A stretch of 63,205 bases of DNA, filler included, from Choristocarpus tenellus KU-1152 (lineage: Eukaryota > Protista > Phaeophyceae): the NCBI GenBank assembly GCA_964200185.2. It is 14 parts of 14 records of this genome, joined end to end, with 100 filler letters (N's around TTAATTAATTAA, not from the genome) between each part and the next. Parts side by side here need not be neighbours in the genome. Positions count along the whole stretch, not along the records: positions 54,946 to 60,452 come from CAXNAD020010575.1; 13 more parts are not named here. One strand, 5' to 3'. Below, in pieces: positions 54,517-60,582 of the stretch (the stretch's first letter is position 1; each line of letters starts with the position of its first letter). A model generated the notes under the pieces. The model saw nothing but the letters and a program-made list of their open reading frames with translations, was not told the origin of the DNA and searched no databases. The position numbers and the translations under genes were made by a program.

Positions 54517-55190
54517 GTGAGACTTCCCCCAGTCTGGAGAAACATCGTGATACACTAACACTGAAGAATCGACCTTTTTGATGACAGCCTCTAGTTTATA
54601 CCATTAGTGGTTGTGAGGGTGTGGCGATGACCTATTGGTGGGTTATTTCTATAAATTTGCCGATTAATCTTCTTAAAGTAAGAATATATCAATGTGATCA
54701 TACCCTAATAATATTAAAATATCCTCACCACTTTCCTCCACAAATTCATTGTTTATATTATGATAGAACAGCAGATTTCAAAAATTGAGGATGGAGCTTT
54801 TCATCGAGGATGGGCTTGACCCAAAATTGACTGGGAGAAAGTGACNNNNNNNNNNNNNNNNNNNNNNNNNNNNNNNNNNNNNNNNNNNNTTAATTAATTA
54901 ANNNNNNNNNNNNNNNNNNNNNNNNNNNNNNNNNNNNNNNNNNNNCCGCGCACCATTTTGTGTCAAACTCATCCTCCATAGTATGCTCCATCCTCAATTT
55001 TGGTGATCGGCTGTTATTGTGTATGGAAATGGGGAATGCCAATTTTGTGTACACCATTTTGCACATGAAGCAATAGAAATAGAGTGTATCGGACAGGGTA
55101 AGAAAGTGGATTAGAATGCAAAAGGGTCCAAACCTGCCTACCTCTCAATCGGGTTGACTCTTGAATGTTAGATTCCTCAATTTACGTAAT

Positions 55191-55350
55191 GGAGTAATCG
55201 TGGAAAGATTGCCAAAAACGATTTATATTGCAGTAATTGAAAGAGAGCCAGTTTCTATTTGACAGTTTAAACAAAAACTCTACTTAATTGATTTGGAAGG
55301 AAATCGTATTGCAAAATATTCAGGTGAGGGATTTTGCGAATTAATCCACG
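55191..55350 (+). pseudogene. ftsQ: Fragment of a bacterial (Rickettsiales-like) cell-division gene ftsQ with a nonsense mutation
   Basis: GVIVERLPKTIYIAVIEREPVSI*QFKQKLYLIDLEGNRIAKYSGEGFCELIH matches the FtsQ POTRA-to-beta-domain signature (R-x-L-P-x-T-I-x-I-x-x-x-E-R-x-P-x-A-I-W-Q...L-I-D-x-x-G); the conserved Trp is TGA at 55260-55262. Not in the ORF track. Confidence 0.75.
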
Positions 55351-56851
55351 GCAAGAGGAACATCATCATCGGATCAGCAAAATATTTCCAAGGAGCAAAC
55401 CTTTGATCCAGGCATTGTCCACCTTTTTAAGTAGACCATGGGCGCATGCCACCCTTCAAGAAAGTCAGCAGTACTTTCTATTTCACAATATGCCCAACGA
55501 AATTTTGCAGAGGATCAACACTCAGGTTTACTTGTCTTAATTCACTTTCCTTGCCCTCTTCCCTAGTTTGCACCTCCACACAACCCATGCTGCCATTCTG
55601 GATGCTTCACTTCAGTCATCCTACAATGACACTCTTCCTACATCTAACCTTAATCCATACTGTACTTACACTGCACAATACACCAAGCATCATCCATTCT
55701 AAATTTCAAATGATCTTGAAAATACAGTATGTACACGCCTCCTCACAAAATCATTAGTCCTTTCGTTCCTGAGCCGTTTCATCTATTACAAGCACTATCT
55801 AAGTTTTATATTTCTTCTGAAACTCACTACTGGAGGCTGAAAGAACCAACCCCTCTCCGCCAGCCTACCACCGTGTTGCTTGTGATCACATCCACTACTT
55901 CATCATAAAACATTGTAAAAACGTTCGAGAAGAAGTTGCACGAAACAAAACAAAAAAAGATGCATGCAGCATGCATGTCTCTCTCTGCTCACACTGCGTT
56001 CATCAAGAATCGTTAAATAAGATGTGGAGTAGTACTACCAAATAATTCCACAAGTATCTCCTGAATGACCCACATTTGGCAGGTCATGTTCAACAGACAC
56101 TCCCCTTAGCCGCCAAAAATTGTGACTTTTTTTGTCATAGGTAATGTAATTCCTTTTGTACCTTATGTCTCTGTTAAAATGGTTGCCAACAACAAAAACT
56201 ACGTGTCCCCTGGCTACCCTGGCTTAACTGACAGTACATGCAAGCACCACAGCAAAAGAATCGACAAAGAGTACTCCCCTCCTCACCCCCATGCCTTCCC
56301 TCCCTCTTTCCTTGCACCAAGCAAAGGAAGGGGTGGCTGAGAGACTACCTAGTGAAGCAATAAACTCCTACACCAATGCTTGCCTGTTTTTGATTTACCA
56401 CCTTCAACACAAAAGGTAGTGGTGTATGGTACAATTTGTTATCCCACCAAACTCAAGACTCACAAGATCATTAAAGGTACCCAACTCAACCTGCCCAATA
56501 CAAGAGCAAACCAAACCCTGCATGGCCTATAATATCTGGGACGTAACCCATTGCTTTTCACCACTCTAATGTTATCCCTAGAGACTTAGGACGCATTAGG
56601 TTCTTCCTACCTAGTAAGTATTCAGGCGCTGGAAAGGAAAAACTGATGCCAAAAGGGATAGTAATAGATGACAACAAGCCATGCAGCGACAGAGCAAAAG
56701 CAAATTCACTAGGAAAAACACCCACCCACCCAACCTTCTCCTCCCCACCTCCCCTATCACTGAAGCGCTATGAAGTTGGTCATTCCATGTGCCCTTCTAC
56801 ACATTGGCAACGATCTTCATTGAGAGGATCAACCCTCGACACCATTGGGAG

Positions 56852-59567
56852 CTAGCTAGATTGATTCTCATCACACCATTTGCGGGCGTTTTGGAACATC
56901 TTGAGCCAGGGACTGGCGGTGAGAGTCTTCCTCCATTCCTTGGGCATCCATGGCCACTATTAATTGGAGTGCAAACATTGAAGGGGACAGGGGAGAGAGG
57001 TAAGGGAGTCAAGGTCTGGTGGGATTGTGGTAGAGGTGGTTTAAGCAAGGTTTGTCCTATAATGCCAAAAAAAAGAAGGGATGTCTCTTCAATGGCGAGT
57101 GTATAGGGGTCAGGTGCACCCCCCCCCCGTCCACCTGACCTATCATATCCAAGGCCTCCAATACTATGGCCATGTCAGCGGTCATTCAAATAATCTTTTC
57201 CGTCTTTGCCGGAACCTAATTAACGTTTGCCAAGCCCTACAATTGCCAAGTGGGATCCATTCAGTCATGGCAACACTTCCAAATCCCCCGCCTCAACAAC
57301 ACAGAAGAACGTCTGTGTATCACCGCAGATCACTACCAGCTCCAAGTGCTTCAAGCCTACACAACTCTCCATGCACCAAGCCATTGTCTCCCAACAAGAT
57401 GAATTGCAGTCAAACCTAAAGACAACAGGTTCCTATGAGAACCTTCCCCTCCACTCCAACGAAGCAGTCCTTGATCACTTTAGTTCTGGGCATGAAGCAT
57501 CTAATCACCTGCCAAGTCAGGAAGCAGCGCTCAGGGTGGGGCATAACAGCCAGGTGGCGGCCATCCTTGGAGCAAAGCCCAGCTACTCCCTCAGGGGATC
57601 CGTTGGGGTTGAAGGGGTACTCCTCTGTTGGAGAATTGGAGTCATCCACATACCTTACAATAGAGGGTAGGGTAGGGTATGGTAGGGATTGGGTCTTTTT
57701 TTTTTTTTTAATGTGGGCGGGGATGGGGATTTTGAGGGTAGAAAAATAGATACTTCTTTTGTGTTTCATAAAGTTAACTCTTCACAACACTTCGGCATTA
57801 GTGAATATCAAAGGAGAGAGTCGAAAACTCCAAAGTGTCAAGACCATCAAGCTACTCTGATAGTAGTGTTGGTCGAGAAAGTTGATAGTAGGTTGTTAGG
57901 GTTAGAGGGGGATAAGGCTCACTCACCTTACTGGAGCAAGTCCTGCATTGAGTACACGGTCTTTGACACTCGACTTGGGGAAGTGCGCTTGACCCTCCCC
58001 ATGAGCTAACCACACGCCTAGGCTGGAGCCCTCCATGCCTTCCAGGAGGATAGAAGGTGACTCCATGATCTATTGAGGGGAGGTAGAGGTAGAGGAACAG
58101 TAGGACGATCGATTTTCAACAGTGAGTTGTACTCTGTGCACGTTGAAGTTGGTGTAGCGTGTACGCTAACAATAAACAAAATATTGCACACCACAGATGC
58201 AGCCATGCCACCAGCCACCAGGTCAAGCACAGGGGGTGAACAACATAACAGCGTTCAATACTTACATTCATGCAGGCGATCCCCGTCCACTATGTAGATC
58301 AAGTCGTAGAAAAAGGGTGAACAAGGAAAGCTCTACCTCCCAGTACACAAGAGCCACGTGTGCCAGAACATAGTAAAAAAAGAAAACGCTTAAAAGAATC
58401 CTTACAGAAACCTCAAGGCTGCATCATCAATACCCAACCATCCTGAAACGTTCACACAAGATCCAACACCCTCCATGATACATCTACCCCCCGCCCACAG
58501 CCCTCACCCCCCCCCCCCCCCCCCACTCACAGCCCCAAGTCCAATGACCATCGTCTTACCTTGAGAGTAGTCCAGCGACTCTCAAACCGCCCACTCTTGT
58601 TGTGCACAAATCGGGGCTGAGCCTCTTCCCCAATCCCTTCGTCTCCTTCTACCTCATCCTGCTCATCCAGCAAAAGCAGTAGCAAGGCATTGTCAACACC
58701 AGCAAGGTACAGGGTAGGTAGGTAGTAGCAAGCCAACCAAGATGGGGAAACTACACAGCCAAGAAAAAAAATATTAAAGACACAACCGCTACAAATAAAA
58801 AGCAAGAAAATCATCACACGGATGGTCAGAGCGGTCGAGAGCAAACAGCGTGCAGAAGAGCTGTCTCCACAGCTACCAACACTTTACTCTCAAGTAGGAG
58901 GTGTACACCTCAAATGGGTGGAGGGATGGGCGGGGAATGTCATTTGGAGTCCATGCCCGAACTCAATTCCCAACCCTGACCAATGATACGGTGCTACATA
59001 GTAATTGTTCCATGAATCTTCTATTGTTCCATGAATGACTTCGGAATAGAATCTTTGTCTCACCACAAACCAGTGTTAGAGAGAAGTAACAGTTACGTGC
59101 GTGTGCGTGTAGCACCCAAGAGCACGCCATCAGAATTCTCTACGAATACCGCAGAGACGAAGGCAGCGTACAAACAGTAGACGCGAGAAAGTCTACAAGA
59201 ACTACAGAGTGCCCCAGAGCCGATCAAAGCTCGTATGGCATCTCTGCACACACCAAAAGCAAGCATAAAATGAACACACCCTAACCTTACTTTTCCTTGG
59301 CCAATCGATGCCAAAAAGGGAAGACATGCCACAAAAAGGTGTACCTCTCTTCCTCCAACCAAAAGCCACTATCCTCTCTGGTACACAACCAAAGGGCTTC
59401 TGATTTCTACAGTGCTGTGTTTTTGAGTGTGGAGGCATCAAAGCCCCTCGACCTCTCAGTCTCACCTTAGGGACCCACCCCAGGAGTGCCATGAGCTGGC
59501 AGCCATTGCACACTCCAAGAGAGAAAGTGTCTTTCCTAGCCTTGAAGGCCTCGAACTGCTCCCACAC
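56852..59567 (-). CDS. PFAS: Phosphoribosylformylglycinamidine synthase (large PurL type), glutaminase domain, last five exons
   Basis: Exons 59567-59466 ([21 protein letters not shown], catalytic Cys), 58658-58560 ([15 protein letters not shown]), 58069-57927 ([23 protein letters not shown]), 57653-57509 ([31 protein letters not shown]), 56956-56852 ([21 protein letters not shown]); phases consistent. Confidence 0.96.
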
Positions 59568-60582
59568 CTGTTCTCTTGAAATGAAATTGAGCGACAATCA
59601 AGTCAAGGTACAGGAAGTGGTGGCAACAAATACAAAAGAGTCATGGCACACCATCAAAACGCTTCCATTCTTTTCCTAAAAAACGGTAACCTTTGCATGA
59701 ATACAGCTCCAAGATCCATCGACCTCTAATGCCATTAAACACAACAAAAATAACAGTTTGAATTTCCTTATGCTCTATTATCCTTGGACAAACTGTCAAA
59801 AACTTCAAAATCTCACACATGGTTAGAGGGAGGCTGTTTCACATCCCAAGGGATGTGAGCATCTCAGGACAGCAACCATCACACCAAGTGTTCTCATTTG
59901 CAACACTCACTACACCTCCATCAACACCAACTCCGTCACCCTTTGCTAGCCCAACTCTGCCCACAATGATATTATCAAGTCTTCGCACCACAAGTTGTAA
60001 CATCAAAAACACCCATGCACCTTTCAAGTTCAAGCCAGCTATCCCATACCATCCTCTCTAATCCAAGTTCAACACCAAGCCCCCTTCACCCAACAAAACT
60101 AGGGTTCAACGTTCTACATTCCTTTCCAAGGTTTAAGATCCATCACGCCCAAACACACCTCCAACCCGTTCTACAGAGAGAGCAAAACAGACAACTAAAA
60201 AAAAAAATGAAAAAGAAATATAATACACATACGCATCCAGAGTCTCTCCCATTAAACCAACAACACACCTCAGCCTCCTCACACAAAAAAACACATCAAC
60301 AGCACACGCCTTCTTGCAGCACCGATGATGAAAATACACAACAAACACATACCCACTTCAACAGCGGGCGCATACAGTATCCCTACCCCCCCCCGTGCGC
60401 CCCACTTTCGCAGTTCCTAACACATTCCAAGAAAGAAACACTACACCTCCCCNNNNNNNNNNNNNNNNNNNNNNNNNNNNNNNNNNNNNNNNNNNNTTAA
60501 TTAATTAANNNNNNNNNNNNNNNNNNNNNNNNNNNNNNNNNNNNNNNNNNNNGGTGGAAAGGGAATCGGTTTTGGTGTGCAG

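Follow-up and report, generated by a model that had tools for sequence, protein, structure and literature searches.

The sequence analysed here very probably carries a dead relic of ftsQ from a Megaira-group member of the Rickettsiaceae, lodged between genes in eukaryotic nuclear DNA, some 1.5 kb beyond the 3′ end of the gene for PFAS. The window, by which we mean the whole stretch of 63,205 nucleotides that was analysed, comes from Choristocarpus tenellus KU-1152, and the piece examined runs from position 54946 to position 60452 (5.5 kb). Within it, 164 bp on the plus strand (55188–55351) represent an internal piece of ftsQ, corresponding to nt 349–514, or codons 117–171 of 263, of the bacterial gene. 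The fragment thus holds 54 of approximately 263 codons and spans the tail of the POTRA domain and continues ~30 residues into the C-terminal domain of FtsQ/DivIB. The features on which the argument depends are collected in Table 1.

Translation of positions 55161–55406 on the plus strand returned the peptide quoted in the first-pass annotation, with a TGA in frame at 55260–55262, and a sliding-window profile placed this peptide in an AT-rich island (~55146–55395) with a GC content of 0.31–0.36, as compared with 0.42–0.55 in the surrounding DNA. The GC content of the fragment itself is 0.33, versus 0.46 for the whole piece. The original description of about 160 bp of AT-rich, ftsQ-like sequence with TGA at the position expected to encode Trp was therefore reproduced. 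Its location was also correct, and its extent, given at the time as 55191–55350, proved to be slightly too narrow: homology has edges at 55188 and at approximately 55351, and beyond both of them identity in ungapped comparisons is at background level.

To identify relatives, a nine-residue motif from the fragment (YI...EREP..IWQ, taking the stop as Trp) was back-translated into a degenerate DNA pattern, which was scanned against one genome per bacterial species. The pattern matched 21 genomes or loci, mostly from Rickettsia, Rickettsiaceae or Rickettsiales, and the open reading frames around the matches were ~265 aa long. In the L018 and L007 frames, Pfam recognised POTRA_1 and FtsQ_DivIB_C, and ddl, murB and murC were located just upstream; for L018 FtsQ the domain boundaries were 70–136 (POTRA_1, PF08478) and 140–253 (FtsQ_DivIB_C, PF03799). 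When Rickettsiales FtsQ proteins were compared with the 5.5-kb piece by tblastn, the sole match spot was 55182–55349, and L018 FtsQ gave the best score among the pattern-found loci (71 bits, E 9e-18). The fragment is colinear with residues 116–171 of P0028, the closest protein identified (see below), and with residues 117–171 of L018 FtsQ, an alignment that takes in the end of POTRA_1 and the start of FtsQ_DivIB_C. Agreement with Rickettsiales FtsQ reaches well past the nine residues that the pattern prescribes, and since the E values range from 9e-18 to 4.5e-24, the resemblance is far beyond chance. These comparisons show that the piece derives from ftsQ, and the FtsQ resemblance noticed at first reading is borne out at both the protein level (tblastn, to E 4.5e-24) and the DNA level (blastn, E 4e-47).

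More conventional searches were uninformative. The two halves of the fragment, 55161–55259 and 55263–55403, retrieved nothing from Pfam, NCBIfam or PDB sequences when searched separately, even at E 10, because each half is too short once the sequence is split at the stop. A search of the ESM Atlas with the first half gave no usable match, and E. coli FtsQ (L001) showed no tblastn match at the fragment because that protein is too distant.

Starting from L018 FtsQ and continuing with its best match, a word-index search gathered about 150 FtsQ proteins. The closest to the fragment was P0028 (89.7 bits, E 4.5e-24 in tblastn), which is 73% identical without gaps and ~83% identical with one gap, the latter being a hand count from the codon alignment; P0038 was the second closest by tblastn. 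The gene for P0028, from an uncultured member of the Rickettsiaceae, lies on Logan contigs from DRR496536 (L023) and SRR29999183 (L024), whose ftsQ is 85% identical to the fragment over 164 nt of DNA (blastn, E 4e-47), and P0038 is encoded on contig JAANSX010645739.1 of GCA_024449895.1 (L025), with 79% DNA identity by blastn. In each of these alignments, positions 55188–55348 pair with ftsQ nt 349–512 across a single 3-nt gap. All three contigs have the gene order acpS-murC-murB-ddl-ftsQ and an intact 263-aa FtsQ, which identifies them as bacterial. The fragment shares its reading frame and motif order with the FtsQ of these bacteria over 164 nt. They differ in that the P0028 and P0038 bacteria have an intact ftsQ in a murC-murB-ddl-ftsQ operon, whereas the window has codons 117–171 only, with a stop and a codon deletion. 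A scan of a metagenome collection with the degenerate pattern yielded nine more loci, none of them closer than 79% over 63 nt.

Several of these sources have features of their own. The contig numbering of GCA_024449895.1 implies several hundred thousand contigs, and the assembly is probably that of a large eukaryote; its L025 contig is purely bacterial and of the Megaira group (glnA, acpS, murC, murB, ddl, ftsQ), and probably represents either a symbiont or contamination there. UWPOB_RICK2 originated from a photosynthetic bioreactor. L021, a Pseudomonadota metagenome-assembled genome (MAG), has an ftsQ-like frame that continues without interruption for 588 codons, which suggests either that ddl and ftsQ share a stop-free frame or that they form a fused open reading frame.

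We placed the fragment in a maximum-likelihood tree of 143 rows, consisting of the fragment with X at the stop, homologues of at least 230 aa and the genome loci from the motif scan; L021 and genome-locus frames shorter than 200 aa were left out. The fragment, P0028 and P0038 form one clade (SH-aLRT 99), in a placement that draws on 54 fragment residues, a quick tree search and one named Megaira anchor. This trio sits within a 65-row clade (support 94) made up mostly of unnamed environmental sequences, and Rickettsia and Orientia are found in a separate clade (support 99). The anchor is P0034, a member of the 65-row clade whose 90% cluster includes the FtsQ of a named species of the Rickettsiaceae, Candidatus Megaera (Megaira) venefica. 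For the MurC encoded on the P0028 contig, the best match among named sequences was labelled "Rickettsiaceae bacterium" and showed 74% identity; identities to named Rickettsia, Tisiphia and Trichorickettsia were 66–69%. Since the fragment groups with P0028 and P0038 and with the M. venefica cluster, apart from Rickettsia and Orientia, the tree points to a donor in the Megaira group of the Rickettsiaceae, and we make this assignment at the level of the group and not of the genus in its strict sense. The earlier proposal that the peptide is closest to Rickettsiaceae FtsQ is upheld by the best relatives as well as by the tree. P0120, an FtsQ from a MAG labelled Janthinobacterium lividum at NCBI, falls in the Rickettsia/Orientia clade, suggesting a mis-binned or mislabelled contig.

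The fragment bears several marks of lost function: it is cut short on either side, the TGG codon of a conserved Trp now reads TGA, and 3 nt have been deleted. With neither a start codon nor a membrane anchor, and with the greater part of both the POTRA and the C-terminal domain missing, it would encode nothing usable, and we see no plausible function for it. None of the features of a functional FtsQ/DivIB gene (a complete open reading frame, an anchor, full domains and a position in a dcw cluster) was found. The two small lesions consist of a G-to-A change and the loss of a single unit from an AGAAGA repeat, and either type of change can be imitated by sequencing errors.

The substitutions bear a different signature. 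Differences from L023 are distributed 5/2/16 over the three codon positions (P 4e-4 against an even spread), and 13 of the 18 fragment-specific changes are at third positions (P 9e-4). Nei-Gojobori estimates of omega were 0.11 for the fragment versus its closest relative and 0.24–0.30 for L023 versus L025, which are bacterial orthologues. We infer that most of the 15% divergence arose in bacteria under purifying selection, and the third-position bias and low omega suggest that the true donor was an unsampled relative of P0028, approximately 15% divergent in DNA. As nearly all of the differences bear this signature, the insertion would be young relative to that divergence, and neutral decay since the sequence left a working gene probably does not exceed a few per cent. 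The first-pass annotation had spoken of a decaying insert. That description fits the discrete lesions, namely the stop, the codon deletion and the truncations, but not general decay, which the omega of 0.11 and the third-position bias speak against.

The surroundings of the fragment are eukaryotic on the side where genes can be recognised. Searched singly against Pfam, the exons of a gene for PFAS (FGAM synthase) appear as five colinear GATase_5 pieces on the minus strand. The first four are followed by GT donors, and AG acceptors are clear in the last three pieces and less certain in the first two. These data confirm a spliced eukaryotic PFAS gene on the same contig as the fragment, with its stop codon at 56852, as had been described. 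The fragment lies ~1.5 kb beyond the 3′ end of this gene. Within a PFAS intron there is a long C-rich run at 58489–58525, in which the plus strand reads C more than 15 times in succession, and GC skew on that strand is strongly negative across 55400–56800 and 59600–60450.

Table 1. Positions of the ftsQ fragment, its lesions, its flanks and the PFAS exons (window coordinates)
Feature	Positions	Strand	Basis
Left flank, ~40% GC, ends at edge of piece	54946–55187		blastn/tblastx of L007, L018, L023–L025; composition
Rickettsiaceae ftsQ internal fragment	55188–55351	+	blastn to L023/L024; tblastn with P0028; ungapped boundary comparison; Pfam on L018 FtsQ
3-nt deletion site, one Arg codon, AGAAGA context, versus all relatives	55208–55209	+	blastn gaps; codon alignment
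In-frame TGA, TGG in every relative (conserved Trp of EREP..IWQ motif)	55260–55262	+	codon alignment to L023, L025, L018; translation
Right flank, intergenic or 3′-downstream DNA up to PFAS stop	55352–56851		blastn/tblastx, Rfam, tRNA searches
Last PFAS exon, stop codon 56852–56854, GATase_5 positions 242–260	56852–56956	-	Pfam; AG acceptor just upstream
PFAS exon, GATase_5 positions 184–235, then GT donor (GTGATT)	57509–57653	-	Pfam E 3.7e-24; splice signals
PFAS exon, GATase_5 positions 143–186, AG acceptor, GTAAGG donor	57932–58069	-	Pfam; splice signals
PFAS exon, GATase_5 positions 108–141, GTAAGA donor, 5′ boundary approximate	58560–58658	-	Pfam; splice signals
PFAS exon, GATase_5 positions 74–113, GTGAGA donor, 5′ boundary approximate	59466–59575	-	Pfam E 1.7e-13; splice signals

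Bacterial similarity in the piece is confined to the fragment. When the donor-type loci L007, L018 and L023–L025, which supply acpS, murC, murB, ddl and the rest of ftsQ, were compared with the piece by blastn and tblastx, the only match was at 55182–55361. The absence of a start codon and of operon neighbours, which had been remarked on at first reading, accordingly extends to remnants of ddl, murB and murC anywhere in the piece. Searches of 54946–57681 for Rfam families and tRNAs found none, and neither terminal inverted repeats nor a target-site duplication was found bracketing the fragment. In the assembly, then, the bacterial 164 bp are contiguous with non-bacterial flanks on both sides, the left of which is only 242 bp long and is ascribed to the host by its lack of bacterial similarity. 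Of the 31-mers sampled from the 5.5-kb stretch, 76–97% were present in three runs, all from one 2024 study that is possibly the source of the assembly, so that they do not constitute independent support. Independent public contigs across the junction were looked up via three open reading frames of the window, and none was on record. An internal 164-bp piece between non-bacterial flanks, with two inactivating lesions and 15% divergence, argues indirectly for integration on the grounds of the assembly.

An alternative is that the contig is an assembly or library chimera, in which the 164 bp would come from a bacterium in the culture or in the host cell, and the stop and the 3-nt gap would be sequencing errors. 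The bacterial part is short and internal, which fits poorly with this reading, as misjoins normally produce one junction and a long bacterial arm, and up to 97% of the sampled 31-mers occur in the contigs of a single run. An omega of 0.11 does suit a gene that is still under selection in a living bacterium, and the intact related ftsQ contig, L024, is on record in three samples that are possibly the same runs as those containing the window piece. Even so, the fragment is 15% away from P0028, and if P0028 were present in the host's runs a second, unsampled member of the Rickettsiaceae would still be needed; two independent inactivating lesions also count against the idea. We regard a chimera as very unlikely. 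The record of L024 has a bearing on the present state of the host as well. One of the run numbers among its three samples suggests 2024, and these samples and the three 2024 runs that contain the stretch may coincide; if they do, a living Megaira-group bacterium exists alongside the nuclear fragment. That a P0028-type symbiont of this group lives in the host today, with the fragment derived from a second, 15% divergent lineage in a very recent event, is in our estimation quite unlikely.

In a variant of the main reading the fragment, perhaps multicopy, would be the one visible part of a larger rickettsial insert that has been rearranged and either interrupted by host repeats or transported by a host mobile element. 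There is a model for such an arrangement in Volvox carteri, where the rickettsial region is a mosaic with multicopy host sequences and a transposon (PMC4324946). In the first-pass annotation a host repeat is placed 170 bp left of our fragment, and the piece ends 242 bp to the left. We nonetheless consider a larger insert unlikely, given that the five donor-type loci matched nothing more in 5.5 kb and that the fragment has no terminal inverted repeats or target-site duplication. A very different proposal, that the resemblance is due to chance or that the sequence is the remnant of a host repeat protein whose second half resembles an NHL beta-propeller, was raised by a phmmer search of 55263–55403 against 1.84 billion representatives. 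This returned 23 proteins at E up to 0.001, and of six that were checked with Pfam, five were multi-repeat NHL proteins and none was FtsQ. These matches are sums over 2–9 short stretches of an LY.(A/I)D..GNRI-type motif, the best of them reaching 57 bits, whereas FtsQ gives one colinear stretch over both halves at 89.7 bits and 85% identity at the DNA level. NHL proteins also leave the first half, the codon-position pattern and the AT-rich composition unexplained. NHL-repeat identity was rejected as a motif-level coincidence outscored by FtsQ over both halves, and this whole class of explanation is exceedingly improbable. A leucine-rich repeat was dropped too, owing to a misfit in repeat spacing and to the decisive FtsQ match. 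At 55275–55325, the FtsQ segment LYLID.EGNRI.KY mimics the NHL-repeat consensus closely enough for NHL proteins to outrank FtsQ in phmmer, and such mimicry is a trap in the annotation of short fragments.

For the nuclear ftsQ relic that we favour, a simple history can be proposed. An intracellular Megaira-group bacterium would have lysed, allowing its DNA to reach the host nucleus, where a piece of ftsQ may have been joined into a broken chromosome at an intergenic site, most likely as filler in end-joining repair. The nonsense mutation and a slippage deletion would have been acquired after insertion. Precedents are familiar. Wolbachia-to-host inserts are common in arthropods and nematodes, and these inserts, together with mitochondrial and plastid DNA in the nucleus (NUMTs and NUPTs), are short, usually non-functional nuclear fragments that subsequently decay and are presumed to originate through end-joining repair. 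It is because organelle-derived and Wolbachia-derived nuclear inserts arise in this manner that we propose capture by end-joining here. The Wolbachia cases differ in that the donors are Anaplasmataceae, whereas the donor here belongs to the Rickettsiaceae, and the fragment is very small.

The nearest parallel is in the nuclear DNA of V. carteri, where truncated 16S, murB and ddlB sequences of rickettsial origin occur together with 75 bp from the 5′ end of ftsQ (Kawafune et al. 2015, PMC4324946). That insert was demonstrated by BLAST and PCR, is mixed with multicopy host sequences and a transposon, and was attributed to past endosymbionts (PMC4324946). The two cases are alike in having a donor of the "hydra group" or Megaira type within the Rickettsiaceae, a eukaryotic nuclear recipient and genes of the dcw cluster that include ftsQ, and in both the pieces are truncated, non-functional and set among host sequences. 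They differ in the part of ftsQ that is represented and in its context. In V. carteri the 75-bp piece is a 5′ end, start codon included, and its neighbours on scaffold 6 are fragments of ddlB, murB and 16S, whereas the 164-bp piece in the window comes from the middle of the gene (nt 349–514) and stands alone near PFAS, at another locus. The V. carteri nuclear genome is also richer in GC than the 46% of the piece examined here, which suggests a different host. No other insert of this kind turned up in a literature search on nuclear ftsQ and Megaira. The phenomenon, rickettsial ftsQ in nuclear DNA, is thus already documented; what is new is the part of the donor gene, the locus and the occurrence of a lone fragment.

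As the fragment is functionless and the phenomenon known, the gain is incremental. In this assembly the fragment is a ready marker by which true integration can be distinguished from contamination by a symbiont, and it gives reason to screen the genome and the raw reads for further rickettsial DNA or a complete symbiont genome. Megaira-group Rickettsiaceae are obligately intracellular, and given this mode of life in the donor group, a nuclear fragment would be a heritable record of a past infection of the lineage. Nuclear records of this kind can reveal the host range and history of a symbiont after the bacterium itself has been lost. The same argument has been made for symbiont-free strains of V. 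carteri (PMC4324946). Should the host prove to contain a living symbiont together with an insert from a second lineage, this would mean repeated infection and an ongoing flow of DNA from symbiont to nucleus outside animals, in what would be a tractable system for its study.
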